Source of the DNA: Paragordius varius
Taxonomy: Eukaryota > Animalia > Nematomorpha
Assembly (NCBI GenBank): GCA_964247055.1
Contig: OZ176051.1
Location: 14,570,001-14,634,000 of the forward strand
Length of the DNA: 64,000 nt
Direction of reading: 5' to 3'
Part shown: piece after piece, positions 1,888 through 52,904 of the stretch
Layout: each line of letters starts with the position of its first letter
How positions within the stretch are numbered: the stretch's first letter is position 1
The notes under the pieces: generated by a model
Databases searched by the model: none
The model's input: only the letters and a program-made list of their open reading frames with translations
What the model was told of the DNA's origin: nothing
Position numbers and translations under genes: made by a program

Positions 1888-3571
1888 CTAGTGTAAATCT
1901 CGTGGTGCTACGCAGCCCGAGGAAGTCCTTCGGACTTCGGGGCGGGATTTTTGATTTTAAGCAATTTTGTTATGCGGCACGAAGTTTTAAAATGAATCAC
2001 AGAGTCTTATAAGTTTTCTGAAATTTGGCGTATCGATATGGCGCAGTTGTAGGCAGCCCCCTACCCAGAGGACAATATAAAAATGTAGTTAGATAAAAAA
2101 AATTGTCTTTTACCTGGAATTATACATTCCTAATAGTTTATGGAAGAATGGCTTCAAAACTAAATAATAATTCAATGATAGCCCGTTTTTTATGAGTAAA
2201 GGGCCTATTTAACTAGGGCTGTGCTGACCAAATCATGACCCGGTCAATTGACCGGGTCATGACCAGGTCAGTGACTATTTATTTTTTGACCATGGTCATT
2301 TAAAAAACAGCTGTTTTTTAAAAAATTGCTGATAATTTTTTTTGGAAGAGAGATAGTAAGATTTTATTGTTTTTTTATATATTTTTGAAAAACTAAAAAT
2401 TAAATATTTTAATATGCTTATTTAACAATATAAAATTGTTTAACATGCATTATAACATTAGCATTTAAGCATATCCAGTTATTTCGAAAAACAAAACAAT
2501 CAAGACTTTGCAAAATATGCAATTATATTTGTGAACCAATAAAAGGAATTTTATAATTGGATATTTCAATGATGTAAGAAAGTGTAAAACAAACTAGGTA
2601 AAATTTTATTTGAAATATCCAGTATTAAAAGCTATTTAATTGAAGATTCAGACCACAAACATATGGAATTCTTGACTAAATTTGATTCAAAATATTTGGA
2701 AACAATAAATATCGAAAAAATGTATAATACCAACTATTAAGAAAAAACATGACATTATTTGAGTAAAATGCAAGTGTCGTTCCAACATTATTTCCATCCA
2801 ATATCGCATGATATTTACCTACATAAAAAGTGGTCATGACCACGGTCATGACCATGGTCTGACTGGGTCCCGGACTTTTTCGAAAAAGCAGTCAAATGCA
2901 CAACCCTATATTTAACAGCTAATTCAAAAAATCCGCTCGACTACAATTTTTGACTTTTTACTGGTAATACTTTAAGCAGCTATTGAACTCATATGGCCTG
3001 ATATTTCTGAAATTTAGCCCCACGCTATTTCGATATGACAAATCAGTTTTTAGCGGGTAGCTCCTTACTCAGCAGGTATCATCAAAGAAACGCTTCACTA
3101 AAATTTTTGCTTTTTAACAGGGAATACGTGGAATCCTTATTGAATTTTTACGGTCTCATACCTAGGGCATAAAATAGATTTAAAAAATTATTTTTGTGGA
3201 CTTTGTTTTTTAAAAAAGGTGGCATTTTAAAGGGGGGAGCGGGTAAAAAGAGGGCCTAAATCAAAAAAGCGAGACGACTGTGTTCGGCGCAATCGAAAAT
3301 AAGTAAACATAAATCATATTTGAAATTGAATGGTCCAACACGTTCTCGGAAAATTGTCTCAAAAACACGATTTTTGTGGACTTGTGTTTTCAAAAAAACC
3401 CGTTTTTCACACGGGGTGGGCCCGAACTGGGGGCCTATTTCAAAAAAGGGCGAAGCTATTGTCGGGGTATTTATTAATGATTATATTTTTTCGATGTATG
3501 GATATTGGGTCTACCGGTTTTCCTGTACCAGATCACAAAGCCAGCATTTTCCATTTTTATAAATATATAGA
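1888..3571 (-). mobile_element. Non-autonomous Helitron
   Basis: On the minus strand it starts TCTATATATTTATAAAAATGG and ends ...GATTTACACTAG, inserted between A and T. There is a GC hairpin GAAGTCC-TTC-GGACTTC near the 3' end. Homologous copies at 43729-45119. Confidence 0.82.
2214..2908. mobile_element. hAT-type MITE nested in the Helitron
   Basis: 11-bp TIR TAGGGCTGTGC / GCACAACCCTA (1 mismatch); perfect 8-bp TSD TATTTAAC at 2206-2213 and 2909-2916; subterminal TGACC/GGTCA arrays including a perfect 30-bp palindrome at 2233-2262. Confidence 0.88.
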
Positions 3572-10561: not shown

Positions 10562-10827
10562 CAGTTAAAATTAAAATTATACGGACAAAAGGTAAAAATA
10601 TAAAGACAAATAAGTTTTCCCAAAATACAGCCATACTTTTTAAATCTTAATTTTTTTAAAAACTCATTGTTTTAAACTCCAAAGAGATGGTAATACAATC
10701 AATTACATATTTTACGATTGTAATTATTTTTTTTAATAGGATAAATTAGGGTTTTAAAAAATATGGGTTGTCTTTTGAAATTTGTCTTTATATTTTTACG
10801 TTTTCGGTATAACTTCAAGTTTTACTG
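10562..10827. mobile_element. Same TA-flanked MITE family
   Basis: TA|CAGTTAAAATTAAAATTATACGGACAAAA ... TTCAAGTTTTACTG|TA. Confidence 0.8.
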
Positions 10828-13826: not shown

Positions 13827-14395
13827 ACATTTGCACTTCAAGAATGTCCTTGAAAACTTCAGGTTGGTCCTAAAACATTTCAAGTTGGTTGAACACTTCA
13901 GTATGGTCCTTGAACATCATATTGGTCCTTTAACTTTTTTGTTTTGTTTTAAACTTTTATCAATCAAATCGTAATATTTTATCGTTTTTGACCTTTTCAA
14001 ATTTTTAAAATAAATTTTAAATATCAATCTTTAATCAGAAACCGGATATCTTTTTTTACTTTCTTAAAATTTGTATGGATATTTATAAGATAACCTAATT
14101 AAATATATAAGTTTTCTAGGTTATTATTTACAATTTTTCATTAAAAACCATTTAAAGTTAAATATTTTGTTAAATTGGAAAAAAATTAGTTTGAAATAAA
14201 ATTGGTATTTGAATAAAAAATTTTATTTTCAAAAAATAGAAATATATAATAAATAAAGAAAATTAGGTTTAAAAATAATAAATAAAAAAATACATGCAAT
14301 TATGGTTAACTCAAAATTTAAAAATTTTAAGGACCAACTTGAAGTGCTCAAGAGCCAACTTGAAGTGTTCAAGGACACTCTTGAAGTGCAAATGG
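13827..14395. mobile_element. Same GGTCC-unit MITE subfamily
   Basis: Same arms and core as 27234-27887, more decayed. Confidence 0.8.
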
Positions 14396-15149
14396 TATAA
14401 TTATTGTATTACAATTAAATTTAATGAGAAATTGTTAACTAAAAATACTTTAATTCTTTCGTCATTTATCTCGGGAGTTTCCCATTAAATTTCTTTGTCC
14501 TATTAATAATTCATACCTCAAGAGAGGACGTGTAAGCACCCTATTGAATAAATTAAGCCTTATTATTATATAAACTATAACATCTACTCCCAAGAGCAAT
14601 CATTTTAAAATATTATTTTATTATTTGTTTAATAGAATAACAAAACATCGCCGGGTAATATTATTAAATATATAATCTATAAAGCGCAATTCATGTTTAA
14701 AATTTATCAAATATGTCAAATAATTATTAAATTTAGTGCATTAGCATATAAATCAGCCCCTAGTTAAGAAAATTAATGTCAAGTAATGGAAAAAGATATC
14801 ATTTCTAAGGCTATTATATCCATATAATTCTGTGTGTTGCTTCAACTTTCAACATTTCTTATCAAAAATCTTGAAAGAAACACATATCCAATATTTTTTA
14901 CAAAAGATAATTTATTTTATTTACACTATAGGGAAGGGTTTTAAATCAAAAAATTATTTAAATCACCATATTACAATTGGAACATATTTTGAATTATAAT
15001 GTATTTCGCCTGATCTGGCCTAACAGAATAAAATTTGGTTGTTAAAAATGTAAATTCTTATGAATTCCAATTGTAAGAATTGCTAGAAATCAATTTTGTA
15101 AACTACGTTCTTGTTTTAGTGGCGGTTACCATGGAATATTTTCTCTCAG

Positions 15150-18100
15150 AAATATCGAAAAACTCATTTTACATCCGAACTTTTGTTGATAAAAAAAAGA
15201 ACATTCCAATACCGGATCAGCATAATACCTTTTCTTCACAAATCGCAAAACGAACACAAAGAAAGAAACCAAATGTTGATCATCACAAAGTAATTCATCC
15301 AAAAAAACAAAACAGCCCAAAAAAGAGTGGGAGCTTAGTTGGTCAAACTGCTGCATTAATTGGGGGTAAAAATTAGTTAATAAAATAATAGTAGGATTAG
15401 TTTAAATTTGTTAATGGTACAATGTATATACATATATTGTAGCTGCGGCGACAGGTAAATTTTTTATATTTTTAATTTTATAACATTTATTGATAAAAAT
15501 ATTTACAACAGGTGTGATTGGTGGTATGTTATATTATTTATTCAATTATTATTTTCGATTAATAAGTTTCTTTTGTTCGGGAGACATATTGTATCTTATA
15601 GTTTTTTTGCATTACTTTTTCTATCAGAAAAAATAGGGGTTGAGTCAATGCATTAAATATCTTTGAAAAGGCTTTAAAAGTTGACTATTTGGCTATACCT
15701 TTTTATGACTCCTATATATCATTTTTCAATAGTTTATAACATTTTGTAAAAGCGTGTCAGGGATTTTATTTTAACAGGTTAATATTATCGAAAGGGGTAA
15801 TATATTTGGAAAAGATGGATTAACACATGGTTTATTTCTAACTCTTCTGTTTGAGTGTCATACTGTCCCCGTCTATCTCTCTCTCTCTCCTCTCTCGCTC
15901 TCTCATATATTTCAAAGCATATCAAACCATATGATTTAATTTGATGACTTTATATAAATTAATATAATGTTAATTTATTAGTATGCATTAAATTTTGTTA
16001 AAAATTTAACTTTTTGTAAGTATGCCAATATTAATGTTATTCAGCCGTCGTGGGAGCCGGAGCTTCGGAAACACCAGAAGTGATTGCTGTCGCCCAAGGC
16101 GTCAATGATATGGAGTTGGGTGAAGATGTAGCACAAAATCTCGCAAACAACGAAAACCCAGCTGTTGAAGAAAATAATATTGAAGAACGACAAGAAAATC
16201 CAGAAAGAAACTCAAGATCTGACCATGAAACTAATCAACCTTCTCAGTCGACTTCAAATTCCAGTAGTTACATATTATTTATTTAAAAAAAAATTGAAAT
16301 ATACGGACAAACCGTAAAATAAAGGCAACTATTTTTTCTAAAGTAACCATTTTTTAAACATAATTAATATAATTATTAATTATTGCAAAATATATAATTG
16401 ATTGTGTTACCGATATACTCTTAAAATTTGAAATTAAAGCATTAATATATATTTCTAACTATTAAAAGAAAATTCAGCCTTTTAAAAAAATAGTATTTAT
16501 ATACCAACCTTTTGTCCGTTTATTTCATTATTTACTGTATATATGGCAAATGTATGATATATTAATTAGTTGTTGCACTGATTAGATAAATAATAATATT
16601 TTTTAATTTAGGAAATCCAGCAGCGCAGAATGCTAGATTGGATACAGAAGATATCGGTAATTTTAAAAATAAAAATAAAAGTACGAATGAAAATAAAAAA
16701 CAAAATTAAATATATTGTATTATTTAGCTGATCGACCAGAATATACTCCAGAAGAAATCGAAAATGGTAAATTTTATATCAAAAATTTATATAAGTCGCA
16801 ATTATAATTTTATTTATCCAATTTTTAAAATAATATAGCCCGAGAAATCGTGGATCGATACGGTAGAACCTAAACACGATATTATATTAAAATTTATCAT
16901 TTGAATGAATATATTGTTATGTGTATAATGATAGGAATGTAAAATTTAAAAACAGGTTGTAATTTTTATAAATAAAAAATAAAATAAAGTACTATGATAA
17001 TTTCCTATCTATTTAGCTCTACACAATATAGAAACTCGTAAGGCAACTGAATACAGAAATCAATTTATTTCATTCTAAACTTCATATATTTAGGTGCAGA
17101 GAATGTGGTGTATGAAGCGGAACATATAGTTACGAGTAAGTTTTTATAAATTACTGATAATTTATACGGAAATCAAAATTATACAGACTAAACGCAAACA
17201 TCTTAGACTAATATTTTTTCTAAGGATAGCAATACTTTTAAACCATGTGAATTTTGGCTTCCAAAATATGGAATGTAGATGTATATTGGTGAGGCTTTAT
17301 TCAACTATCATGGTTTAAAAGAATACGAGAGTCTTTTTAAAAAATAATTATTTAACGTTTAATTTGTTTATTCGATTGTATAACTAAAGACACCAGGTTT
17401 CTTGGAAGAGGTATTGAAAATATTTATACATAAATACGTATAATATTTGCGGAAATATTTAACAGATTTAACATGAATAATTTTAAATATTAAGCGCCTG
17501 CACAAATCCAACCGTTAAGCCATGTAATGCATAAATGTTTTGTTTTAAAACTTAAATTCTTTTAAAGGACATATATCTGACCAATTTTGTGACTGTGTTT
17601 TATGCTAAATTGATTTGTTATCAATATTTGACCGGAATAACAGTTTATCCCATTTTATATTAAAATTAGTAAAATTGCACATGCATAATATTATAGATTA
17701 AAAGTTAATACAGGATGAAAATGGCTTTTTAGCGTCTTTTTAACAAAATAGGCGCTTTCGGTTACCTAATATTAACATTATAATAATCCAACTTAGAAAA
17801 GCTTACTTAATGTTTTATGATTGGCTAAATTTATTTTTAAAGCGTTATAACAGTAAAAACTAATATTATACAGACGAATCGCTAAAAATATTATTAAAAA
17901 GACAGCCATTTTTAAACTTGTTTAAGTTTATGTCGTCGTTTTGAAATGCAATACAAAACAAGATGTAATTGGCAACTGAATTTATTTCGAGGTGATCATA
18001 ATAAAGATCAAAGGATAAAAATGCCTATTTTTCGTTATTTTCGAATGTGTCAGGCTATATATATATATATATATATATATATGTGATTATAAATAATATT

Positions 18101-21100
18101 TTATTAAATCTTAAGACTGTATTGCAAACACAATAAATTTATTGTAATTCATTGCACTTACTTAAAAAGTTTCTGGGAATTAAAAATCTTATTACAATTT
18201 GCGAAAATAATGCAAGATAAAGATTTGCAAATATTAAGGGGTCGCATAAAACGACTCAGCGGACTGCATGTGGGGCCTTGAACATCATTTGTCCAAAAGA
18301 TTAACATATGATCCAAATGTTTAGGTTTAATAATTATTAACTAGAGTAAATAACAGTATAAAAATGTATTTAACAATTGCTGTTTTCTTCATAATAAATT
18401 ATTCGATTCCCTAACTCTTTTAATTTTCCATATTCTACTTTAATTAAGAATAACCGGTTACTATTCGCAAAATTAAAATACCGGTAACAATTATTTATAA
18501 AGCAAAAATTGTTATCCACGATTTTCAGGGATTTGGATCTAAGTTTAATCAAAAAATTCTATATATAAGCAGTATGTAATATCACTGTTTAGTCATACAT
18601 GTATATATTTCTAATTGTATTTAAACAATCAATTTATAGTATGCTATACGCTTACTTATTTATATTTCTATATGAGCTAAAATATTTTCATATTTTTTAT
18701 TCATCTAATGTAAATTAAATTATTAGTTCGAACAGCACTTTTTTACGATTTAATGGCATTATCATTATTTAAAAAAAATAAAATCCAGGTATCCAGAAAA
18801 GGGTGTGGCAAGCATGGTTCCAACCGCCACTGTCCGCACAGGACGACCATTACCGCCTTCCTGCGCTTTTACACGCTTCAGGGCAGGGGGCGCCACTTCA
18901 TTGCTGGGTGTTTCTAGGGGTATATAGAGTAAACATGTAGTACCACAGATAAATTAAGAGCGATAATAATAGTAATATTAAATTTTATATAATTTACCCC
19001 CTAATAAAGTATTTAAGGTCACAGACAACCACAGACTGTCCCCCACCGTATCCGCCCTTTTCGCAGATAGTTTTTGAAGCCGGCGCTCGCGTCGCTTTGG
19101 CGTAGTGTATCCTCTTCTCTTCCTTTAACAACACTCTCTTAATCTGGGCACAACTATTCTTCCAACCTCCGTTCAGCACTAGTGTTACAAAGTCTGACTC
19201 CGCAAGGCCCACACGCTGCAGGAAAACACACATACGTCCAAGCCATGTTTTTTTATACTTCCAATAAACTGGGCGACCATTCAATTTCCATTCCAGTGCC
19301 GCCTTAAGCGAACTCTTTTCGTTATGGCGTAGCTGGTGGGCTACCACATTCAGACTTGACAATGGTATTCCCACTAGAGACAAGGTATCGGTTTTTAAAT
19401 GAAACTTACAAGTGGCAAGTTGGCACCGTGTTTTCCTGTATCACCTGTGATGATTCTTAACGATTTATTTACAAATAACTGAGCCTTGCGGGTATGCTTG
19501 ACAGAATTTGGCCACACCGAAAAACCATATAGAATTCTAGGGAGGATTAGACTTTTAAATATTTTCAACTTCAACCTTTGACCAACCTCTTTCGAGCGCG
19601 ATAAACAATGTAATCCGTCGAAGGTAAGCTTTGCGGAATGCAATCTGAGTAGAGGTGAGTTAAGAGCGCATCCGTTTTTGTCCATCATAACTTCCAGGTA
19701 TCGAAAGCCACAACCTCCAGCTCCCCTCCATTGAACATCCTCATATCAGACCCACCTATTATCATCACTTTTGACTTTCCATAATTAATATTTAGGCCAA
19801 TAAGCGTCAATTCAGATTCCAGCTGATCCAGGGCCTGTCCCAGGTTCTGCTCCGTATCCGTTAAGATGAAAAGGTCATCTGCATAGCAGAGCACCAGGAA
19901 AAAGACGTTGGGGAAGCTCGCATATAACTTCCCTACTATTGAGTCCATAGCTAAGTTAAAGAGCTTTGGGGACAGAGGGCATCCTTGCTTCAGGCCTAGT
20001 TCTGAATAGATGTAGTCCGAACGGGTCGTTTCAACTGCCACCCGACTACGTGTACGGATTATCAAGTGAAGTATAAAGTTCTTAAAGTTTTCCTCCACAT
20101 CAACCTTCTTCAACAAACGCATGACGTGCTTCCTATCCAGTTTATCGAATGCATTGGCTATATCCACAAAACCCAAGTAGAGCGGGTGCTTATGTCGCCT
20201 GCTTTTCTCGATAAAAATTACCAAAGAGCAGAATAAATCCATCGTTCCCCTTCTCCGCCTAAAACCACAGATTGCGTGATGGAGTTTATCATCAAAGGAC
20301 TGTAGTCTAGACAGGGCAATGTTGGCCAAAACCTTGTACCCTGTATTCACCAGGGCTATACCCCTGTAATCATCAGGGGTGCCTGGATTATCTTGTTTTG
20401 CGATATTAATTATCTCGCATTCCACCCATTTCTCCATCAGTGTGCCACGTTCTAACCAACTGTTGATGATAGGTAAGATATTGTCAGTCTATTTCCTTCT
20501 TCCAGGCATCCACCGCGCTGCGGTCTGGCCCACTTATAATTTCGTACAAATTCAATACCTAGGCGAAATGTTACTTCATCAAATTTCAAGGAGAATGGAT
20601 AATCATTGACAACGTCATCCTGGGTCATTTTATTATTCCCCAACAGATCAACGTAATGTCGGTGCCATGAGATCACATTCTTCTGGCTATTTATTATCAG
20701 CCTGCCATGAGAATGCAGACTAGTACAGGGTCTGGGTCGTCGAAGCAGGAAACGAATCATTGAATAGTGTTCCCTGTGTTTCTCATTAGCCGCCAGTTTA
20801 GTGAAATATCGTGAAATAAACGCATGCCTGTCCTTGCGTTTCAAGCGATCCGCATTGGCTCTAATCCATGCTCTGCGACGACTCGTGTAACATTTATTCC
20901 GTATTGCATGGAGAAATTGTTTAGTCCCAGCAGATAGCCAATCCTCGTAGACAGCATGTCTTTGCTTGATTCTGGAAAGCTCACCAAGCACAGTGGCCTA
21001 TTCTGATTTTGGACCTATGAAGGGGCGCGGAGGGGCCCAGGTCACCTGTAACACTTCAGCGCAGATCAAAAAGTGATCGCTGATCAGGTCGTTGTATATT

Positions 21101-24100
21101 GCGCAGCCAACTTTCTTCACCATTGATAGATCTTTCTCTCGTATAATGACGAAATCAATTTGGGAAGGGCACACGTTCCATGCAATTCTTATGTACGGAC
21201 CATGTTGGCTATCTGGGAAAAAGGTGTTGCCAATCAATGGACGACGATTATCACAAAGGGATGCGAGAAGTCTACCTGCCTTGGTGGAAGTAGTAAGAGT
21301 GTGTCTTCCAATAGCCCACGATGATATGTTTCTTCCCATCCTGCAGTTCATATTACCAAAAATCAGGAGGCGATTCCGTGCCGGTACCGAATCCAGAATG
21401 GATCCTAGATCATTCAAAAATTCAGGATATTCTGAAATATCATGAGGGCCGTAGGCGCTAATAAGCGTATAATATTTAGTGCTGATTTTTATTTGAAGAT
21501 AGGCCAATCTATGAGAATGCGGCACAAAGTTAATAACCCGTCTCAGAATTTTGTTCCTTACCAAGAATCCGACACCTCCAGATATACCATTTGCTTTGCT
21601 GAAGAGGGTGAAGTGTTGGCCAAATTTTTGGCGACCATCGAAAGTGCAACGAGTTTCCTGAAGACAAAGAAGCTGAAGGGAGTTATTTGCGCAAATCGTC
21701 CTTACCTCCGCCAATTTGTTCTGAATTCCAGGGATGTTCTAAGCGCCAAACTTTAGAAGATGTGGGGTAGACATATGGATATATAAAGAGGTAATAAAAT
21801 TAAATTGTACAATAAATAAAATATAGCTGAATCTGATAAGAGCTGAAACGCGGGTAATAAAACTTGGTTTATTTCTTCCCGCTTCAACATATAATCTTAT
21901 CAGTAGCAATTCCCTATTTCGCGTTAATTCACGCTGAGTTGCAAATTAAAATATGTATAAAACATTGAACCATTTTTATCCACATTCTTTAAACACGCAC
22001 ACGCATAGGAGTAGGATGCATTTTTTTACAAAACCAAAAATACGTATCTCTCCTTTCTTCATAAGTAAATAGGGTATCTTATTATTGCCACCCCTGGCTA
22101 TATTAAATGATGAGTGGCAAAAATGACAGTCTATGATCTTCTCATATATGTTTTTGAATATTTCGAATTGATCTAATCATAAAATATTTCCTTATATCTC
22201 TTTTATTTAATCAATAATTTAATTTTGAATTTATTAATTATCTAAATTATGATTTTTTAGTTTTACGCATGACTGGGCTAAGACTTGAAAGCCATTTGCA
22301 TGGTAATGAAACAATTTAAACTTTATACAGCTTTAGGTGAATCAAGTATGCATGTATTGATAATCGATATAATTAGATTTCATAGAAAGTAATTATATTA
22401 ATGAATATTCGACAACTATTTAAAAGGGCCTAAAACTAAAAGACAAAATGTTTTTGAAAAGACACCCTTATATGCTACCTGGATTTTTTTCAATACATTT
22501 GGAAGCATATATAAAATATACAATCGAATTATTTGTTACCAAATCATATTTATTTTTTGTTTTGCAATGAATTATATTAAAAAACTAGTTTTTAAAATAT
22601 GGTTGTCTTTTCAAAAAATGTTTCGGAATTTACATTTTGTCTGTTTTATTTATTTTTACCTTTTTCATTATTAATAATTTTTGCATGGCAGTTTTAAGGG
22701 ATCAAATAACAAGTATATATTTAATAATTGTGAAAAATTTTGGGGCAAATTACTGGTACAAAAATGTAAGTAAAGAAGGCCGCAAATTAGAAACAGCTTT
22801 GAGAGCTAATTTTTGGTTGGAAAATGAGATATAATTGCAAAGTTATTTATATATTTTAAAAATGTGATAATATAGCTTTCTAAAAAAAAACAGGGTTTTC
22901 CAATGCATGATCTTTTTTTACTGTAATTACAGGGTTATTATATTTCCACATACTGTTGTTTAAAATTACTCTCGGAAAATAAAAATGGGTTTATACGCCA
23001 GTTAGATATCAAAGGTTTTGAGAGATTTTTGACAGAGTCCATTTGGTGTTATGTATAAAGAATGAGATTATTGGACGATTATATTCTGTTGTTGCAATTA
23101 TATAGTAGATATTTATACAAAGCAAAATAGAGATTTTCGATTTTTTTAGGCAAAGCTATAAGCCCATTATCGTTTATTATTAGATGCATGAGAATTTTAA
23201 GTTGATATGTGAAAAAGAATATGTATGACGATCATCTCATTCTTATAAATTTATATTTATTTCTTAAAATATTGCTTTGGAAGTAATCACAATAAGGGTA
23301 AAGTTTGTGCCTCTCGGAAAAAAAAGGAATTGTAAAAAGATAATCTATAATTAATTGGGCGATCCCCAATGGTATATTAACAAATAATAAATAATATAAT
23401 TAAATGTGTTGGTAAAGATTATAACCCGAACTATGTTTCAGGTTATAGTTCAACCGATTATACGTGTAAATCATAAAAATGCGCGATTTAAAACGAAAGG
23501 CTGTTGAACGAGGAATTAACCCGGAAAATATGAGATGGTAAAAGGTAGGCTGCATAAAATACTAATAGTTAGGGTAATAAAAGGAAGAGGCAAGAATCAT
23601 ATTTGTTTTTTTAAACATTTATAATGCTGAGTTTTGGGGCTTGAATCACACACAGATATTTGAAATTATTATTTTTTAACTAGATTTACGGCAACTTCTA
23701 GAAGGTATCAATATGTATTATATAATATTACCAACAGGCGTTGAGGACGAGTTTCATGGTATTTTCGCAATATAGCATTATTTAAATTAATTAAAATTTA
23801 ATTGAACCACATTTTGTAATAAACGATTTACATATTAAAATCATAATTTGAGTTTTTTATATTAGTTTTTGAACAAGGATTCAGTGGTAAGTTTTTTGGA
23901 TAAATGCGTAATAAACTGTTCTATTCTAATATTTAAATTTTTACCCCAGACAGTACATCCGCAACTCTAGGTGAATTAATATATATAAACCGATAAATAA
24001 TTAAAATGAATTATTATATTTTAGCCAGCGATCAAAATATAGTGGGTAAAATTAATATTTGTATTATTCATTATCCATGGCAGAAATATCCGAAGACTTT

Positions 24101-24166
24101 AATGGTATAATATAAATTGTTGTTAACATAATTCATAATACATAGACGCAATAAACGCCGAAGAGT
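15150..24166 (+). CDS. Micro-exon gene, copy A; unknown product (basic region, Gly/Ala hydrophobic segment, acidic low-complexity region, run of 7-aa modules); ends not resolved
   Basis: AG/GT-bounded, phase 1-1, stop-free exons: 15150-15365 (216 bp), 15443-15454 (12), 15512-15523 (12), 16045-16263 (219), 16612-16656 (45), 16728-16766 (39), 16839-16862 (24), 17017-17037 (21), 17094-17135 (42), 17390-17410 (21), 22261-22302 (42), 22331-22345 (15), 22377-22388 (12), 22692-22712 (21), 23684-23704, 23738-23758, 23866-23886, 23950-23970, 24025-24045, 24084-24104, 24146-24166 (each 21). The last 18 each have a homologue in copy B. The first three have no homologue inside the window and are less certain. 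Confidence 0.85.
18790..21774 (-). mobile_element. RTE-clade-like non-LTR retrotransposon (single APE endonuclease + RT ORF), near full length, inactivated
   Basis: ATG at 21774; APE motifs (LCLQETR, GNMNCR, SQIDFV, SDH) at 21714-20998; RT motifs (YRGIALVNTGYKVL, FVDIANAFD, GLKQGCPLSPKLF, YADD) at 20437-19685. At least two in-frame TAG stops and several frameshifts; GC clearly above the flanks; no ORF1 upstream. The 3' boundary is uncertain (18790-18994) and no TSD was found. Confidence 0.9.
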
Positions 24167-25559
24167 GTAAGGGATTTATTTTTTGAAAATTTATTTTCTA
24201 TTAACATTTTAAACTTATTTTTAATACATTAATTTCGTATCCATAACCTGCTAATCAACTCTGCGGGTGTAATCAGCTTTAACCCTTGTGTGAGTTAATG
24301 CTTTGTTAAACCCATCTTTTTATTGGGTTGCCTTTTTTCCTTCAACTAAATAAATGTTTCATTTTGGCAAAAACAACGAATCTCTTTTCGACCAAAACTA
24401 ACAGTTTAACCTCTATTCTATCGATTTAACATCCGTTTTATATCTATCCTTTACTTTCTTTCTCGTTCAACCAATTTTTGTAAAAATGCTGCCGATTTTT
24501 AAATGCTCATTTCTATGACTGGATTGTATCCTCTCTCATAAAATATTAATATTTCTATCGCATAAAACAATAAAGTATTAAAATTTATCCAACAAATTCA
24601 TTTAATATATCTATTTACATCGAAACTTGGATGTTCGCAGATTTTACTTTAAAAAATCTGTTGACGTTCATGTAGTGATATCTATAGATAATATTCATCT
24701 ATTACTCTTTATTAACCTAAACCCGGCGTTTCAGTTTGATAATCCACTTGTTAATGTTTGTACTTAAGCTAGTGTTAAAAATCCTAACCTTTAATGAGTT
24801 TTCGGAATTAAACTTATGCTTCTTTTAAAAACATAGAAAAATAGTTTGTATCTTAATATTATACATTATTCGGTATAATAATGATTGATTAAGTTAAAAT
24901 AATTTGTTTCATAAAATTTAAAGATGGGTACTAATTTCTATATAAAATACAACATAAAACCAAGATTTTTTGGGGGGTTGGGGAGTTATCTTGCCAAAAA
25001 CAGTATAAACTGATATTATTAATTTTTGACTGCAAATTTATACAGTTTAATTATCAATATAAAGACATGGATGCTATTGGTAATTAGATCAGAGTAAACA
25101 TTCACCACGATTTTTTATTAAGGAAAGTTATTTAAGTTTTAGCTTTTTCAATGGGATTTCAAATTTAATTATTTATCATATGATCATATTTTATTTTTCA
25201 AATCGTTAAGGATACATAGTGTTTTTAACCGATAATTTTTTTTATAAAATAATAAAAAAATAGAATTTAATTTTGTTTTCTAAATCCATCCAAATGGATT
25301 GTATGATTTATGGTATTTACTTGATATTTATTTATTAGCTGATATAGACGATAATGAAATATGACTTGGTGAAACACGATGAAGAAAACAACATTACTTT
25401 ATTTAACATTAAAAAATTTATGTTGAGTAAATAGATTATATAAAATGTTGCCAATAAATATATATAAATATTATTTTAGTGCCTTCTTTAGATTAAAAAT
25501 TTAAACAATAGAATAATATATTAATTTTTAGTCCATTATTTTATAACGACTTGAGTTGT

Positions 25560-26270: not shown

Positions 26271-27233
26271 CAGCGATTGTAGCTAATGTATTATGTGAGT
26301 GAAAACTGCTTTCTACCAAAATCATCTTATCTTGGATAATAGTAAAAATTCATTAAAGGATACGTAGTTTTTACTTTGTAAAGTCAGATTTTACGTCGGG
26401 TATTTATTATCAGCGATTTTGGGTTTTAATCTTAAAATTTGGGCAGTTTTTGAATATCAATCATACAAACGGAGAAATAAATTTCATTTTTTAAAGGGAT
26501 AAATCAACGATTAACATCAGTCGTTGGGTTCGAAGGAACTCAAATTTTGCAGGAGTTTAGTTAACTAATTTAGCAATGGATGGAAAAAGGTCATTGGAAT
26601 TCCATTGTATCCTAAAAAAGGAAAAGAAGTGATTTAAGGAAAATAAAAATCGTTCGCTAAATTAGATAATCGAGTGGAAGCTTCAGATATGGGCTAATAT
26701 TAAATGACAAATATGGCATTCAAAAAAAGAAGAGAAACTTCAATTTAATTTAATAATAGTTTAGTTGGTTAACACGATTTACACAAAAAATATCCTTAAT
26801 GCTAATGCATAAAAGTATGGACGTCTTCATGGTGCTTTTTTGGTTCTTACGAATCATTTAAATTAATATTATTACTTTTGCTTTAATTGCTTGATACCAT
26901 AAGAATTCGTACATCATCTCATTGATTTATTGCTCTTCGCTAACACGAACTGGGAGAAAACAGAATCAAAATGCTTGTGAATAAAAGAACTTTTATGTTT
27001 AACTTTTGTAATTTACGAATGCAAAAAAATAAAGTTTTCGAAAAACGCACCCGCTCAAAAATTGACCTATAAAAAACATAATCGAAGATAATTGGGCAAA
27101 TGAATTTAATAAGGTCTTATAAAACCAATTTAATCAAATAAGTATCAATTGTCAACTTCCCTCTATTTTAGTTTTTTTATAATTTAATTTAAAAATATTA
27201 ATAATAAGTTGAAATGGGTTAGGTTTTAATATA

Positions 27234-27887
27234 CCATTTTCACTTCAAGAGTGTCCTTGAACAATTCAAGTTGGTCCTTGAACAATTCAAGTTGGTCCTT
27301 GAACAGTTCAAGTTGGTCCTTAAACACTTCAAGTTGGTCCTTTGACTTTTTTGTTTTGTTTATAACTTTTATCAATCAAATCGTAAATAATTCATCTATT
27401 TTATTGTTTTTAACCTATTTTAATTATTTAACATAAATTTTTAATCGATATCAACTTTTAATCTTTGAACCGTATATCTTTATTAATTTCTTAAAATAAT
27501 TTTGTATTTATAAGATTTTAACACGAAATGAAAAAATATATAATTCTGGGTTTTTAATTAAAATTTTTCATCAAAAACATATAAAAGTCAATAATTTTGT
27601 TCAATTGAAAAAAAATAGTTTGAAACAAAAAAAGTGGTTTTCAATAAATTTTTTTATTTTTGAATGAATAAATATATAATAAATAAAGATAGGTTAATAA
27701 ATAATAAAATAAAAATATAAATGCAAAAATTATGGTTAAATCAAAATTTATAAATTTTAAAGACCAACTTGAAATGTTCAAGGACCAGCTTAAACTGTTC
27801 AAGGACCAACTTCAATTTTCAAGGACTAACTTGCACTGTTCAAGGACCAACTTGAAGTGTTCAAGGACACTCTTGAAGTGCAAATGG
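27234..27887. mobile_element. TATA-flanked CCATTT...AAATGG MITE, subfamily with 21-bp TTCAAGTTGGTCCTTGAACAA units
   Basis: Long inverted arms of tandem 21-bp units around an AT-rich core; TATA on both sides. Confidence 0.85.
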
Positions 27888-28224
27888 TATATTCCAAATT
27901 TAAAAAAAGTATCTATTGCCAAAAATTATATTGAGAAAAATATATAGCAAACGGAAAACTTATATATATGTTGAATAATAAACATAATTTTTATGTATAA
28001 ACTAGCTGGCCCTGTCACGCTTCACTGTAACGTGGTCACATTGATGGTCATTCTTTTTTTCAATAAATAGAACCGGAAATATAAATCAAACTTAACGATA
28101 TTTTATCCAAAATAATCGGGCTCAAGTAACTTAACACAAAATTGTTCATAGAAAACTTTCCTTATTAATTGACTGCCATTTAATTTATTTTTTGTTGTTT
28201 TACAAAATATTGGTCAGTGTAAGG

Positions 28225-30656
28225 CAGGGATGTCCAACACAAATGGCTTAAAGAGCCACCTTTTCGATCTCAAAATTCCAAAGAATCACTTTTTATTTAT
28301 ATATATCAAGACATTGGCAACAAATAAATTTATTATTTTAACATATAGATGTGCTAATTTTCATATCAAAAAGTAAATAAACAGTATAAATATAATGATG
28401 CTTTGCTAATTAAATTATATCATTGTAAAAAAAGATAAAAAATACATGTATATGGTAAAATTATTGCAATTCGATGGTATGACTAGAGTAGACTGTGGCG
28501 ATTTTAATCCTTAAAATGTAACCTTTTTTATCTAATAAAAATAAAAGAAATAAATATTTTTCATTGCATAATTAAATTTTTAATGGGATATTTGTTTTGT
28601 TATTTTTTTGCTTAATTTATTCAAATCTATATCAATATTTGATACAGCACATCTCAATTCATTCTCTAAGTTTTCATCAGTTAATAAAGAACGTGAAAGA
28701 GATTATGTGTATTTTATTTTAGAAAAAAACTTTCACACAGATAAGTGGACCCAAAAGCACAAATTAATCTTTGTGCAAAAATTCCTAAATCAGGAAATTT
28801 ATCAAACGTTATATATTTTTGTAAAATTCAATTTTATTTGTTCAAATAATAATTTTAATTCAATATTTTTTAAATCTAGTAATTCCATTTGTAATAATAG
28901 GAGCGTTGATAGCTTCAACGTAGAATGGACTTCAAAATAAATCAATTATTTTTTCATATTTTGTCATATCCCCGTATCGATTATTAAAAGCTTTTAATAA
29001 TATGTTAATTTGATTTGCATATTTTGAAAAATCGTTAGTTTTACCAGCTTTAAATCTATTCTATTCTGGAAAATGTTCAGCATTATTTTTTATATGGTAA
29101 AAAGCTTTAATGTGGTTTTAAATTATCTTGCTTTTGCAAAGATTCATATAATTGATTTAGTTTTTCGGTAATATCTACGGAAAAGCTGAAATCTGACAAC
29201 TAATCTTCATTGGTTAATTCCTCTACCAAATAATGATTCTGCAATAGAAAAATATTTATTTTTTTTAATGAATAATAAAATCTTTTTAGACATTTTCGAC
29301 TAAGCCACCTTACATTTGAAAAAATATAAGATCTCCATATTCTGAATGAATTTCTTTTAATAACTCCTTAAACTGCCTATGCTTCAAAGCATGAGATTTA
29401 ATAAAATTAACTACTTTAACAACAACGGTCATTACATTGTCCATTGTCAGAGCATGTCTGCAGAGATTTTCACGGTGAATCATGCAATGCATTATATATA
29501 TGGTCAATATTAATACCATCGGATTCCATCTTATTTTGCAATAATTTCATGGTTCCCTTGTTTTTTCCCATCATAGCTGGGGCACCATCTGTTGTCAAAC
29601 AAGATAGTGCCCTCATATTTAATTTATTGTCCTCAACATTTCAATACATGAAACATATCAAATCCCTTAGTTGTATTTTTCATCGGAAGTAAGCCTAACA
29701 ATCTTCTGTTATATTAAAAAATTCATCTATCCCTCGAATAAAGACTACCAATTGTGATATGTTGCTTATATCTGTGCTTTCATCAAATGACAAGGAAAAC
29801 GCCACAAAATTTTGAATTCTTTCTTTTAGGAAAAGTTGAATTTCTTCTGCGGTGTCTGTAATTTGTCGACACATAGTATTGCGCCAAAGACTTATACTGG
29901 ATATTAATTCAACTTTATTAGGCTAAACACATTTTATAATTTCCAGTACGCATTTCTTTACAAACTCACCGAATAAGGCTTCATTTTTTGGCGAGTAAAT
30001 TGGCAACAATAAACTTGCCTTTACAATCGGATAAAGTTGCGTGAATGAATTTGTTGGTTGGAGATTTTTAATATTTTTTAAAGATTCTAATTTTATTATT
30101 TTCATTTCTGTAGTCATATTAATAAAATCCAAATGCATGGTATTGGCATGTCTTCTTAAATTATATTCGCGAAACCCGTTTGTCGTAACTTTGCAAAAAA
30201 GGCACTCCGCTTTGTTGAAAATTTGAGTAAACCCATATTTTAATTCCCAGTCGGGATTGTATTTTCTAGTTACTTTTTTAAATTTATGCATATTGAAAGC
30301 TAAATAAATTATTTTAAATATTTATCTTTTTGCAAGTATCAATATTTCAATGGACCCAAATTATAATTTCCAGTATTGGTATGAAAGCTAAATAAATTAT
30401 TTCAAATACCTATTTTTTGCAATGTTTTAATTTAATGTGAAAGTTATGATCTTGAAGTTGGATATAACATGCAGGAAAAAATGTGTTTTATAAATGATTA
30501 AATGAATGCGATGATAGATATTTATAATAAAGAATCTTATTAAAAGTTTCTAAAAAATTTTTAAAAAAAAATAGAAATTAATTTTTTTTAAAAAAATTTT
30601 TTTTTCAAAATTTTTAATGAGCCACTAGTGGCCCAATACCTTGTTGTAAACCCCTG
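28225..30656 (-). mobile_element. Decayed hAT DNA transposon, SPIN/Buster/Charlie-like (GTF2IRD2-type) transposase
   Basis: BED-finger-like WELKYGF..ECLFC..NLRRH..H (30291-29923), FSLSFDESTDI and HCMIHRENLC..VVKVVNFIKSHALKHRQF (29519-29310), broken by stops and frameshifts. Termini CAGGGATGTCCAAC and GTTGTAAACCCCTG; 8-bp flanks only 4/8 identical. Confidence 0.85.
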
Positions 30657-43200: not shown

Positions 43201-43728
43201 AATTATATATATAGAATCAATCCAATTAAATTATTATCTACTTTCAACTATTTTTTTCATTTATAAACATTTTATCAAATCATTTTAATCAAACCCGAAA
43301 CAATTTGTTTAGACGTTTTTATTAATTTAAAATTAATCTGAAATTTTGTTCAGTTTTGTAAATACATTATGCACTGAGTGGTCCTATACGCTGTAAGTAT
43401 AAGTTACTTAATAGTTGATCTAACATTTTAGTTTCGCTGATAAGTCCTTTTATTTAACCGAATGCCATTTGTTAATTTAAAATATTTTATATATTTTTAG
43501 TTATTATTTAAATATTTTGAATCTATTAAGCTACATGCTGTTAAAAATATTGGGTTATTGAAGGAAATTTCCCATTTATTATTAAAAATGTTTAGTAAAA
43601 ACTCAAAATTTTACGGACAAAATGTGTAAATATAAAGAAATATATTTTTTTCTAAAAGACAACCATACTTTTGAATCTAGATTTATATCAATTAACTTAT
43701 TGTTTTAAATGGCAAAGTGAGCCATATA

Positions 43729-45119
43729 ATGGAAAATGCTGGCTTTGTGATCTGTTTCCGGAAAACCTGTGAACCCAATCAAATCCAAATATCAAAAAAA
43801 TATAATCGTTAATGAATTCCCCGACAATAGCTTCGCCCTTTTTTTGAAATAGGCCCCCAGTTCGGGCCCACCCCGTGTAAAAAACGGGTTTTTTTTGAAA
43901 ACAGAAGTCTACAAAAATCGTGTCTTTGAGACAATTTTCTGGAAAACGTGTTGTACCATTCAATTTCAAATATGATTTTTGTTTACTTATTATTGCGCCG
44001 AACATAGTCGTCTCGCCTTTTTGATTTAGGTCCTCTTTTTACCCGCTACCCCCGTAAATTGCCATTTTTTCCAAAAATAAACAAAGTCCACAAAAATAAT
44101 TTTTTGATTGTATTTTTTGCCCAAGGTATGAGACTGCAAAAATTCAATAAGGATTTTTCGTTCACTGTTAAAAGGCAAAATTTTAGTCAAGCGTTTCTTT
44201 GATGATAACTGCTGGGTAAGGAGCTACCCGCTAAAAACTGATTCCTCATGTAACTTTGTGATCTGTTTCCGGAAAACCGGTGAACCCAATCAAATCCAAA
44301 TATCGAAAAAAATAATCATTAATGAATGCTCGGACAATAGCTTCGCCTTTTACTTAAATAGGCCCCCAGTTCGGACCTACCCCGTGTGAAAAACAGGTTG
44401 AGACAATTTTCCGGAGAACGTGTTGCACCTCGTCAATTTCAAATATGATTTTTGTTTACTTATTTTTGATCGCGCCGAACATAGTCGACTCACTTTTTTG
44501 ATTTAGGCCCTCTTTTTACCCGCTACCCCCGTAAAATGTCAATTTTTTCAAAAAAAAACAAAGTCCACAAAAATAATTTTTTGATTGTATTTTTTTGCCC
44601 AAGGTATGAGACTGTAAAAATTCAATAAGAATTTTTCGTATTCCCTGTTAAAAGGCAAAAATTTTAGTCAAACGTTTCTTTGATTATAGCTGCTGAGTAA
44701 GGAGTATCTATCATATGTATAGGATGTTAAAAAATATATGGATAATAAAACATTATTTATGGTAATCTATATATTTATAAAAATGGAAAATGCTGGCTTT
44801 GTGAATTGGTACCGGAAAACCGGTAGACCCATTTAAATCCAAATATCGAAAAAGTATAATCATTTATGAATGCCCCGACAATAGCTTCGCCCTTTTGTTG
44901 AAATAGGCCCCCAGTTCGGGCCCACCCCGTGTGAAAAACGGTTTTTTTTGAAAACAGAAGTCCACAAAAATCGTGTCTTTGAGACAATTTTCCGGAGAAC
45001 GTGTTGGACCATTCAATTTCATATGATTTTTGTTTACTTATTTTCGATTGCGCCCCCCCTCCCCCCAAGAAGTTCGAAGGACTTCCTCGGGTTGCGTAGT
45101 AGCACGAGATTTGCGCTAG
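43729..45119 (+). mobile_element. Head-to-tail cluster of the same Helitron family (two partial copies plus one internally deleted copy with both termini)
   Basis: Homology to the reverse complement of about 3060-3570 recurs from about 43729, 44253 and 44766. Copy 44766-45119 begins A|TC and ends CTAG|T with the same hairpin. Confidence 0.8.
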
Positions 45120-48100
45120 TAGAGATATATAATAGTAACACAATCAATTTTATATTTTACAATTATATAACAGCTTATATGAGAAACATTAAGGTTTTAA
45201 ATGTATGGTTGTCTTTTAGAAAAAATATTTGTCCTAAAATATTTTCCTTTGTCCGTATATCAATTTTTACTATAAATAAGATTTCTATATGAATGTTAAA
45301 TAAAAATATAGGATAAAAATAGATTAATGCGTAGAGTTGTACTATTTAAATAGTGATTGACTTAAAATGTTCTAATAAAGTGTAAATTAATTACATATGA
45401 AAAATTCAATAATTTTTGATTTTAAGCATAATTTAAATAGAGAACCTAGGGTTATTTTTAATTTTTTACGCAAATAGGATTTACCTAATTATTTATATAA
45501 ATTAAGCCTTAAAAACTGTTTTTGATTGTTATAATAATCTTTGTTGAAAAGAGAATGCATTTTATTTAAAAAGTGATTTAGAATAAAAAACAAATTATTG
45601 AATATACCAAATAAAATTCTGAAATGTAGATCGGTATCCGTTTCGTTTTCTAAAATAGTTATCAATGAAATATAATAGATAAATATGAAAATGACACATA
45701 AAATTTTCAGTCAATTTAGAAATTTTTGTGTCATTTTCTATAACTAATTAAGGGCTAGGGAGATCAGCTTAAATCCTATTACATTTTAAACCTAGTGATA
45801 TAGACTGTTGAAAAAACAAAATAATATTAAGGATATGGAAGTCGTCGATTATAAATGTTCCTGTCCTAATTGCAAAGAGATACCGACATTACATTCTGTA
45901 CAAAATATAAAGATAATTGAAATCTATAAGTTTGGTTTTAGCTTCAATATCTGATATGCGTGCAATAACAAAATTTCTTCCCCTTTATTCATACAGTGTA
46001 TACATTGGTTTTACAATATGGTCAATTAATATACTAGCATATGGATAAAAAAGATAAAATGGTTAAATTTGAGTTTTTTTACTGGATTACAACATTAAAT
46101 ATTAATTTGTTTCATATCGTACGTTACTTTATTACCAATGGACCAATATTATTGTGCATAATAAATGGTTAACATTTCTTAGCATTTGAATTTTTTTAAA
46201 TAGCGATAATAATAAAAAATTATATATCTAATCGAAAAATTTGCTTTCTATGACCTTAAAGCGCTATATATGAAAAAATATTTATAAAAAAATTGGAATT
46301 GTTAGAAATCGATTTTTTACATTTTTAACCCCAAAATGTTTGTGTGCAATATTCTCTAAAAAATTATCCTAAAAAAGGGTGTAATATGTAAGTAAATTAT
46401 ATATCTGTGATTTTTAAATTTTTGATACTATAACATAATATCACACTTTAATTAAATATATTTAAGTATATATTTACAAATTTAAGCTCTCATTTAAAAA
46501 TAACCCTAAAATGTGTTACATAAATTCAAAGGCGATTGAAATGTTCAAATGTTTAAGAATGAAATAAAACCATATTCGACTCAAAAATTTGATAATTTTA
46601 TTGCATATAAACAGCACATATCATGAAATATATTTATGGTGTTTATTTTTTATCCTTTTCTGAGCCGATTTATTAATGGCTGAATTGAACATATTGTTAG
46701 TAAAAAGAAAATTGATTTTACAATTAGTTTATTTTCCTCAAATATTATTTCATTTTAATACTTGAGTATGTTATATGTTCTTTTGTGCCATCCGTTATAT
46801 TAGTTGCTAGTTTTTTATATAATAACATTTATTAAATTCCATGACATTAATTTAATATTGAAGTTAACACAAAGCGATAATAAAACCGTTTTTCAATAGA
46901 AATCGAAAACTAGTTTCATCCTTAAATTTAGTATTTAGAATTTAATTTTGTTTGTGCAAACCATTCCATTATAAAATTAAACAATACAAGTTAACATGGA
47001 TATCAGAAAAACTAATCTTATAAAGCCTATATTTATGTTATTTCTGTTTAATTTTCCTTTATTACAATTTCAGACAAAGCGTAAATACATAAAGTCAAAT
47101 ATTTTTTTTCAAAAGACAACCATACTTTTCTTAACCTTCATTTTTTCTATATAAATTATTAAATAATAATATAATTAAATAGGTTATCTATTTATCTCTA
47201 TCATATATCCAAAAAGTACAAGGGTCTTTTGAAGAAAAAATTATCAATTTTATATTTATTTCCGACTATCAATAAATTGGATTTTGGTAGCAGTAAATTT
47301 CCGTATGTAACTTAGAATATATAATATAGATATATGTGGTATTAGTTAAATTTTGTGAGAGCTTTAAAAGATAATCATTATAATCAGTTTTAAATATTTT
47401 ACATTTATAATATCAAAAATATTAGGTTTTAGTCATAACCATATCCTTATTCAAGTTGTGCCTTGTTGTACTCAGACCCTCTGAATGGCCACGAGCAGTC
47501 AAATATTTTTATCGTATACTAAGTGATCAAAGCATAAAACTAGACTAAATAATTATTGAGAAAAGTTCAACATATCGTTTTTAACTAAATTTTAGATATT
47601 AAAGCTAAAAATATTAATAAACTCATTTACCAATTCTTACAAACTGGTCCGAAATGAATACTATATATAAAGGAAATTATTCATACGTGTGATGTATGAG
47701 TTATCATTTGCCATATCTATAAGTAATAAATATAAGTATGATGCCAAATTTAAGGTACAAATATTATTGTAGATTACGGTTTTTTTGAATATAAAACACC
47801 ACAGCAGAATCCGAAATTCGGAAGTCAGGATGAATAAAAATGAAATTAAAAAAATCAATCAGTGATATATTAAAAAAATCAATTTTATTGGATATTAAAG
47901 TGAAAAAGCGTAAATAAAATTTTTAAAATAAAATCAGCAGTTGTAAAATATCATAAAAAATTTTTGTTGTTTAGCATGTGTCAACCTGGATTCGAGATAT
48001 GGAGTTATGCATTTGTAAAATTAATAGTAAAATAAGCAAACTATACAATTTATTACATCTTTTGGTATAATTAAATTAAATAGTAGATATGTTTAGGATC

Positions 48101-49880: not shown

Positions 49881-51014
49881 TGATATAGAGCACCTACCAC
49901 AAAAGGGTAATAACTTATCACTCGTAAGTTCCAAAACTAAATCATGATAATCTTGATACATTCTATCAAAAATATATATAGAGTAACAACTGAAATTATA
50001 CGGACAAAATGTAAAAATATAAAGACATATTTTTTCAAAAAGACAACCATACTTAATAGATTTATAACAATATAACTCATTTTTTCAATGGCAAGTAAGA
50101 ATAGATATATAACACTAACACAATCAATTTCATATTTTACAATTGTAACTAAGTAGCTTATATAGGAAAAAATAAGGCTTTAAATAGTATAGTTGTCCCT
50201 TATAAAAATATATTTATCTTTGCATTTTTACCTTTTATCCGTTTATTAATTTTTACTGTATTCATCAGGTTATTTTTATACCCCACGATTTCGGAGTCAG
50301 TAAATATATAAATATATATATATATATATTTATAATAACCGCAAAAATGAAAAAATAAATTACCGGCACAAAGAAAAAATTCCAATAATTAAAAACATGT
50401 TTATGGTATATTCTATTGCAGAAATAAAAAAAGTATAGATAAAAATTTTAAATTTATTTATACAAAATTTATATTATAGTGTTGTTAAAAATATAAAAAT
50501 ATATTAAAAGTATTTTTGAAATATTTCCATCTTTGAATTGGGAGGTCAACATAATGCATTTTTTGTAATAATCTATAAATTACTGTAAAAAATAAACCTT
50601 TGATAAAATAAAGATTTAATATATATTTAGCAAAACTATGCTATTAACCTGGTACATATATTTTAGCATTAGAAATTAGCTGTTTAAATAATAAAGTAAA
50701 TATTAAAAATGACAAAAAAATTATTTTAGAAAACAACCATACTTTTGAAATTTTGATTTTTTTACAGTATATAATTTTATTTTTAATATAGGGAAATAAG
50801 TTATTAACAATCCATTCTAAGCCGTGTTTTGCAAACTAAAACGATGTTAAGAATTTATAAACAAGTTGAAAAATATATGATTGTCCTTAAAAAACTTGCC
50901 CTTTAATTGATATGATTTGTCTGTAAAATTGATTTTTTTCATTAGCTGTCCACGCCCTATGATATATTGAATGCGAAAATATGGTCATTTCATATTATAA
51001 ACAGTGCAAAAAAT

Positions 51015-52620: not shown

Positions 52621-52904
52621 TGTTAAAATCGTTTGCATATTATAAACAGAATCAATTTGCTTGTTTAAACAAAAGTATTTGCCTATATACTTTTACGCTT
52701 GTTACGCTTTATGTATAACAATATTTACTGTAAGGCTGAAGATAAATTTCTTAATTGACTCAACTAAGCACAAAACATCTAGATAGATTTTAAAAATATA
52801 AATCTTTTAGATAATTCAGAAATTTATGGTAAAAAATGCCATCCTTACATTGAAGATTATTTTTTTAGCCATTGTAATTAAAACACAGTACTTCCTGAAG
52901 TATA

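Follow-up and report, generated by a model that had tools for sequence, protein, structure and literature searches.

Two kinds of animal gene provide the yardstick for the micro-exon gene pair described here, which lies in a 64,000-nucleotide (nt) stretch of contig OZ176051.1 of Paragordius varius (the window): the micro-exon genes (MEGs) of Schistosoma and the bicycle genes of sap-sucking insects. MEGs contain runs of very short exons (6-81 bp), multiples of 3 and removable in frame; they escape automatic annotation, lack homologues beyond their lineage, occur as paralogs, and in a few cases encode membrane-anchored products (PMC4015677; bioRxiv 10.1101/2023.06.21.545858). Their proteins carry an N-terminal signal peptide and reach at most 189 amino acids (aa), their introns run from 0.1 to 5 kb, and micro-exons account for up to 75% of the coding sequence (CDS); the genes are reported from Schistosomatidae only, and their alternative splicing is documented (PMC4015677; bioRxiv 10.1101/2023.06.21.545858). 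Bicycle genes (Korgaonkar et al. 2021; Stern and Han 2022), found in aphids, phylloxerans and scale insects, are recognised by gene structure (PMC9168663; bioRxiv 10.1101/2020.10.28.359562): micro-exons are numerous in them, and codon position 2 is where nearly every internal exon begins, that is, the introns are in phase 1 (PMC9168663). They form paralog clusters of extreme divergence, carry secretion signals and usually CYC motifs, and have long introns between the micro-exons (PMC9168663; bioRxiv 10.1101/2020.10.28.359562).

The gene in the window (gene 1; 22 exons, plus strand, 15131-25364) resembles the MEGs in that its 20 internal exons are all multiples of 3, 19 of them measuring 12-45 nt; in addition, it is missed by open reading frame (ORF) calling, has a paralog, and found no homologue in the searches described below. 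It differs from them in having no signal peptide; its product is longer (310 aa) and is built from a 66-aa basic head followed by an internal hydrophobic segment. Nine of its introns measure only 28-63 nt, and micro-exons supply 49% of its CDS, less than in the extreme MEGs. The comparison with Schistosoma MEGs drawn in the initial annotation thus stands for the architecture; membership fails on the missing signal peptide, on the 49% share and on the many introns of 28-107 nt. Schistosome genomes have a G+C content (GC) of about 35%, which the window, at 25-27%, does not fit.

A GC of 25-27% would fit aphid-like genomes, and the likeness to bicycle genes is close as well: the build is one of phase-1 micro-exons in a paralog pair, and codon position 2 opens every one of the 20 internal exons. 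The coefficients published for the bicycle classifier (PMC9168663) give gene 1 a generalized linear model (GLM) logit of 7.16 (p 0.999, against a cut-off of 0.72). That classifier had a single aphid genome as its training ground, and any gene of MEG-like build would pass it. One could then suppose that gene 1 belongs to this family of fast-evolving secreted salivary effectors. The absence of both an N-terminal signal peptide and a CYC motif from the 310-aa product speaks against this, although non-CYC bicycle clusters do exist in aphids; so do the introns, which are not consistently long as in bicycle genes. Given also how unspecific the classifier is for MEG-like genes, membership seems quite improbable. 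The architecture as read from the DNA matches both kinds of gene, and membership of either is not supported.

The exon chain and its convergent paralog

The exon chain emerges when segments of 15000-24400 are listed that are bounded by AG and GT, have a length that is a multiple of 3, and are open in frame from the third base. AG precedes each of exons 2-21, GT follows each of exons 1-21 (21/21), and exons 2-21 are all multiples of 3 (Table 1). Every intron falls after codon position 1 (phase 1), and the internal exons are therefore of class 1-1. The 21 AG/GT-bounded exons of the initial annotation, lying between phase-1 introns, were all found where it had placed them; its count of ten exons of exactly 21 bp was right, and the splicing model reproduces its single open frame ending in seven heptapeptides. 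Its remark that the ORF track overlooks the gene is also well taken: this is a genuine gene of symmetric phase-1 micro-exons, unseen by ORF calling. The full CDS is 933 nt with one stop, at the end. Exons have a GC of 0.40 and introns of 0.23. Nine of the 21 introns are very short (28, 31, 33, 38, 41, 54, 56, 57 and 63 nt), with longer ones interspersed. The window as a whole is AT-rich (GC 0.23-0.31 in most 2-kb bins), and long ORFs are nearly absent from it.

Table 1. Exons of gene 1, the paralog, candidate and dead exons, and the intronic retrotransposon. Positions are those of the window.
Feature	Position	Strand	Evidence and remarks
Exon 1, first coding, 235 nt	15131-15365	+	open from ACC ATG G to donor G/GTAAAA; basic N-terminus, start of hydrophobic segment
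Exon 2, 12 nt	15443-15454	+	tgtag/.../gtaaat, in frame; GC 0.75; Gly/Ala hydrophobic segment
Exon 3, 12 nt	15512-15523	+	aacag/.../gtatgt, in frame; Gly/Ala hydrophobic segment
Exon 4, 219 nt	16045-16263	+	end of hydrophobic segment, start of acidic region; paralog 63456-63235, 222 nt, protein identity 67%
Exon 5, 45 nt	16612-16656	+	paralog 63107-63063, equal length, AG/GT kept, 33/45 identical
Exon 6, 39 nt	16728-16766	+	paralog 62985-62947, 30/39 identical
Exon 7, 24 nt	16839-16862	+	paralog 62881-62858, 21/24 identical
Exon 8, 21 nt	17017-17037	+	paralog 61677-61657, 14/21 identical
Exon 9, 42 nt	17094-17135	+	paralog 61599-61558, 27/42 identical
Exon 10, 21 nt	17390-17410	+	paralog 61524-61504, 14/21 identical
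Exon 11, 42 nt	22261-22302	+	paralog 59870-59829, 32/42 identical; next intron 28 nt in both copies
Exon 12, 15 nt	22331-22345	+	paralog 59800-59786, 12/15 identical
Exon 13, 12 nt	22377-22388	+	paralog 59751-59740, 8/12 identical, both splice sites kept; weakest exon, GC 0.17
Exon 14, 21 nt	22692-22712	+	first of eight heptad exons; paralog 59682-59662, 18/21 identical
Exon 15, 21 nt	23684-23704	+	paralog 57590-57570, 15/21 identical
Exon 16, 21 nt	23738-23758	+	paralog 57538-57518, 16/21 identical
Exon 17, 21 nt	23866-23886	+	paralog 57438-57418, 18/21 identical
Exon 18, 21 nt	23950-23970	+	paralog 57340-57320, 20/21 identical
Exon 19, 21 nt	24025-24045	+	paralog 57260-57240, 21/21 identical; preceding intron 68% identical
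Exon 20, 21 nt	24084-24104	+	paralog 56943-56923, 18/21 identical
Exon 21, 21 nt	24146-24166	+	last base T, donor GTAAGG conserved; paralog 56865-56845, 14/21 identical
Exon 22, coding part of terminal exon	25339-25364	+	8 codons and TGA (25362-25364); acceptor tttattag; paralog 55413-55388
Convergent paralog, exons 4'-22'	55388-63456	-	collinear BLAST matches, equal exon lengths, splice sites, open frame
Dead 21-nt pseudo-exon, intron 7 of gene 1	16935-16955	+	in-frame TAA, weak donor GTTGTA, intron-like composition; aligned to paralog candidate
Candidate extra 21-nt paralog exon (TENLRI)	61746-61766	-	tgatag/.../gtaaat, open, in phase; good splice sites
Candidate 15-nt in-phase exon, 127-nt intron 4 of paralog	63161-63175	-	ttgtag/.../gtaata; no gene 1 counterpart
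Broken non-LTR (long terminal repeat) retrotransposon, 4850-nt intron 10 of gene 1	18790-21780	-	Pfam Exo_endo_phos and RVT_1 in at least 4 ORF pieces; non-coding for the gene

Independent evidence for the chain comes from its paralog. When the region was compared with the window by BLAST, a second copy appeared about 30 kb away in convergent orientation (collinear minus-strand matches at 56.9-63.5 kb); its first three exons fall beyond the end of the window. The two copies have 19 exons in common, 18 of them of equal length (exon 4 is the exception), and the spliced frame of the paralog is open. All 37 comparable splice dinucleotides are kept, where the neutral expectation is about 1e-13. DNA identity is 77% in exons 5-21 and 67% in the alignable short introns; introns change length freely and without regard to the frame (33 vs 31, 38 vs 296, 154 vs 1180 nt), while exon lengths are stable. 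Differences at codon positions 1, 2 and 3 number 37/20/41, synonymous divergence (dS) is 0.65 and non-synonymous divergence (dN) 0.20, and dN/dS is thus 0.30. The exons and their open frame are conserved and under purifying selection. Exons 18 and 19 together are identical at 41 of 42 positions, a match with P 2.6e-4 given the mean. With no more than 68% identity in the intron that separates them, gene conversion is ruled out as the cause, and selection on the exons themselves is indicated.

Splice-site matrices trained on the paralog only, then run across the window, recover 15 of the 19 short internal exons of gene 1 exactly; their matches are about six times denser inside gene 1 than outside it (2.9 vs 0.5 per kb). 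No micro-exon gene besides the two paralogs was found in the window. Five of the eight well-supported polymorphic sites listed in exons 1 and 4 from DNA runs, a small number, are at third codon positions, which fits the coding frame.

The shortest introns deserve mention in their own right. The five at 22303-22330, 22346-22376, 23705-23737, 24046-24083 and 24105-24145 measure 28, 31, 33, 38 and 41 nt; their counterparts in the paralog measure 28, 34, 31, 296 and 57 nt. Intron 11, the 28-nt one, must be removed, because its retention gives an immediate in-frame stop.

One could still suppose that there is no functional gene here, only a chance pattern or two decaying pseudogenes, as there is no transcript evidence and no homologue was found outside the window. 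Such a view would have to accommodate a frame of 311 codons, for which the probability of being open by chance is about 1.5e-12 for this base composition, the unbroken set of splice dinucleotides, and two copies that are both still open at this synonymous divergence and with a dN/dS of 0.30. It is extremely improbable, and we hold with high confidence, from the DNA of the two copies, that the locus is a real gene pair.

Ends of the gene and the predicted product

The initial annotation let the first exon begin at an acceptor at 15150. Within the exon 1 frame, however, an ATG in good context (ACC ATG G) lies at 15131, 11 nt past an acceptor of its own, cttgttttag (15119/15120), and a model that starts there is better. 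The coding start is taken as this ATG; the acceptor before it suggests a non-coding exon upstream.

The same acceptor admits another perspective, in which a longer gene ends in this chain. Exon 1 would then be internal and span 15120-15365 (246 nt, again divisible by 3), and a signal peptide encoded further upstream would make the product a secreted one, not an anchored one. The acceptor is in phase, and the frame is open from it. A non-coding 5' exon explains the acceptor equally well, however, and the context of the ATG is strong. Moreover, 11 kb of upstream sequence, scanned for an ATG-started hydrophobic exon ending in phase 1, gave one poor candidate and none that convinces; the lone candidate sits where BLAST also places copies of repeat elements of the window. 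A longer gene of this kind is improbable.

At the other end, the chain had been given as finishing with exon 21. The paralog, however, retains the GTAAGG donor of this exon, and about 1.2 kb downstream lies a block common to both copies (86% over 35 nt) that begins with an acceptor, encodes SDIDDNEI in gene 1 and YNIDNNEI in the paralog, and has its TGA at the equal position; the conserved terminal exon is thus exon 22. An AATAAA follows some 80-90 nt past the stop in both copies (at 25453 in gene 1), which is weak evidence in AT-rich DNA. A read-through C-terminus after exon 21 (CKGFIF, then a stop) was rejected, as read-through in the paralog meets no stop and both copies have the donor and the downstream exon. 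The Cys of the 21-exon model came only from this read-through; Ser replaces that codon in the final product. Intron 21 also contains two short collinear blocks kept between the paralogs (about 83% over 24-35 nt; 24446-24569 vs 56383-56264), which could be splicing elements or further small exons.

The product has an isoelectric point of 4.7 and three unlike parts. Residues 1-66 are rich in Lys and Arg (net charge +10). Residues 67-93 form the sole hydrophobic stretch, 27 residues rich in Gly, Ala, Val and Ile with net charge 0 and a Kyte-Doolittle 19-residue maximum of 1.86; four exons contribute to it, exon 1 with its end, exon 4 with its start, and both 12-nt exons between them. The last 217 residues are strongly acidic (net -35). 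Judged by hydropathy, the 310-aa model has no N-terminal signal peptide. It is an established principle of membrane topology that the more positive flank stays inside (the positive-inside rule). An internal segment of 27 residues with its positive flank on the N-terminal side (+10 vs -35) is what is expected of a type II signal-anchor, and we infer a membrane protein of that type: a cytoplasmic basic head, and an acidic helical stalk predicted to face the lumen or the exterior.

The helical stalk is suggested by periodicity. In the last 72 residues of both paralogs hydrophobic residues recur with a period of 3.5-3.6 (P about 0.01), and in both copies the last eight exons of 21 nt mostly encode hydrophobic residues at their first and fifth positions; each of these exons thus equals one heptad, in fixed register. 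Coincidence of exon borders with a structural repeat is familiar from the 54-bp exons of collagen, the PEVK exons of titin and the repeat exons of nebulin. Gene 1 is like these in that eight consecutive exons each encode one unit of the repeat; it is unlike them in that the repeat, at 7 residues, is far shorter, and in that the exons have no clear similarity to one another. When the ten exons of 21 nt are compared with one another, the closest pair agrees at 11 of 21 positions, no better than shuffled sequence; recent tandem exon duplication is therefore not visible. By comparison with MEGs and bicycle genes, a product that is predicted to be membrane-anchored, acidic and built of one heptad per exon, with no detectable relatives, would be unusual.

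Repeats in and around the pair

Mobile elements account for some of the differences between the copies. The retrotransposon in intron 10 of gene 1 has a GC of 0.36-0.42 against 0.25 around it. BLAST finds no copy of it in the 1633-nt intron 10 of the paralog, and the insertion therefore probably postdates the duplication. A word-based protein search with its reverse transcriptase returned only two distant matches (25-29% identity, ENA proteins). Intron 4 is longer in gene 1 than in the paralog (348 vs 127 nt) because of an AT-rich repeat resembling a miniature inverted-repeat transposable element, which fills most of it (16279-16544). Further copies of this repeat, in either orientation, lie near 10567-10823, 45135-45279, 49974-50203, 54385-54469 and 57103-57233.

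Other elements lie outside the pair. The segment at 14100-14400 is a very high-copy repeat: in sequencing run X1 the summed contig depth is 200,000-800,000, while its surroundings have about 1,000, and rearranged joints are numerous. An element of about 600 bp occurs twice (27230-27890 and 52901-53530, 82% identity), matches itself in reverse, lies outside the gene duplication, and looks like a foldback-type transposon. A three-copy element, at 3260-3559 (+), 43700-44038 (-) and 44778-45143 (-), has a shared ORF whose conserved peptide ends in RSQSQHFP. An ORF of 122 aa at 29923-30291 (-) has a Cys/His pattern that resembles transposase-derived (hAT/zinc-finger-like) N-termini; a word-based protein search with it gave no match.

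Possible exon skipping and the probable default product

The sequencing runs that match gene 1 (X1-X5) look like DNA: over 14000-18780, the contigs of four runs continue into introns without splice joints. Run X6 consists of low-depth 151-nt pieces, one of which crosses exon 7 into intron 7; it was dropped as an exon-only source, since some of its pieces extend into introns.

One way to understand so many symmetric exons is to suppose diversification of the MEG kind, in which combinatorial skipping yields many variants of one gene. Schistosome MEGs do vary by skipping (PMC4015677). In gene 1 all internal exons are of class 1-1, no ordered pair of exons creates a stop at the junction, and skipping any of the eight consecutive heptad exons would keep the helical register. 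The initial annotation had noted the absence of T from the ends of the exons before the last, and of junction stops in any skipping combination. Both observations are true: exons 1-21 of gene 1 end in 14 G, 5 A, 1 C and 1 T, the T belonging to exon 21, and the paralog exons in 11 G, 6 A and 1 T. As an argument for skipping the missing T falls away, because the 5' splice-site consensus (G or A at -1) already accounts for it; it carries no extra information. Symmetry, similarly, makes skipping possible but does not show that it takes place. The paralogs have kept 19 of 19 shared exons, 18 at equal length, through a dS of about 0.65 under purifying selection, as expected if the exons are needed rather than freely optional. 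Diversification of this kind is unlikely as the account of gene 1, and a variant-generating role is a hypothesis that the DNA neither requires nor excludes.

The candidate 21-nt exon in intron 7 speaks to a different and weaker claim, that of evolutionary gain or loss in frame: the paralog has an intact copy, whereas that of gene 1 is dead. This also counts as a point for diversification, in that such a change would have occurred. If the paralog candidate is a real exon, one heptad-sized cassette would have been gained or lost with the frame unharmed.

The explanation we favour, and consider probable, is an intact lineage-specific gene of 22 exons with a convergent paralog, whose membrane-anchored acidic helical product is made by default as the full-length isoform. 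In this explanation the basic head would stay in the cytoplasm, the hydrophobic segment would act as an uncleaved signal-anchor, and the acidic stalk would be exposed to the lumen or the outside of the cell, each of the last eight 21-nt exons supplying one heptad of an amphipathic helix. The all-phase-1 build would most likely be inherited from the way in which genes of this sort originate and expand in this genome, where class 1-1 exons may be added or lost without breaking the frame. Skipping would be possible; there is no evidence for it, and the default product is probably full-length.

Several points weigh on the other side. None of the words sampled from gene 1 occurs in the RNA runs labelled as the same species, and no listed RNA run contains the gene. 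For exons 1-3 the window offers no paralog sequence to compare, and the start and the hydrophobic segment thus rest on one copy; a short upstream coding exon may exist, given the in-phase acceptor of exon 1 at 15120. Only a hydropathy scale and the positive-inside rule speak for the topology, and a segment so rich in Gly and Ala is a weak anchor, which could instead be a soluble or membrane-peripheral element. Finally, the homology searches took in exons 1 and 4 only, 150 of the 310 residues. With these, the lack of a recognised homologue reported at the outset was repeated: Pfam gave no match, the Protein Data Bank (PDB) sequences nothing significant and the ESM Atlas no match scoring above 0.71, and a HMMER profile built on exon 4 of the two copies had 0 matches among 1.84 billion representative proteins. 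Rfam and tRNA scans, and an exact-pattern scan of metagenome contigs, were empty.

Symmetric micro-exon genes have so far been described as lineage-specific oddities of blood flukes and sap-sucking insects, linked in both to secreted host-interface proteins. The present locus has their architecture, but its product looks membrane-anchored instead of secreted, its exon borders follow a heptad repeat, and its organism does not obviously fall into either group. ORF calling does not see genes of this type, and standard annotation has difficulty with them; a conserved paralog offers a means of validating them without RNA.

A bolder perspective, fairly improbable on present evidence, supposes that splicing sets both the length and the anchoring of the acidic stalk, and that this is a third independent animal lineage with symmetric micro-exon genes. 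Were it true, each of the eight heptad exons left out would take about 1 nm off the helix, with the frame and the hydrophobic seam preserved; loss of the two 12-nt exons, which give 8 of the 27 hydrophobic residues, would release a soluble protein; and symmetric micro-exons would serve a tunable surface protein.

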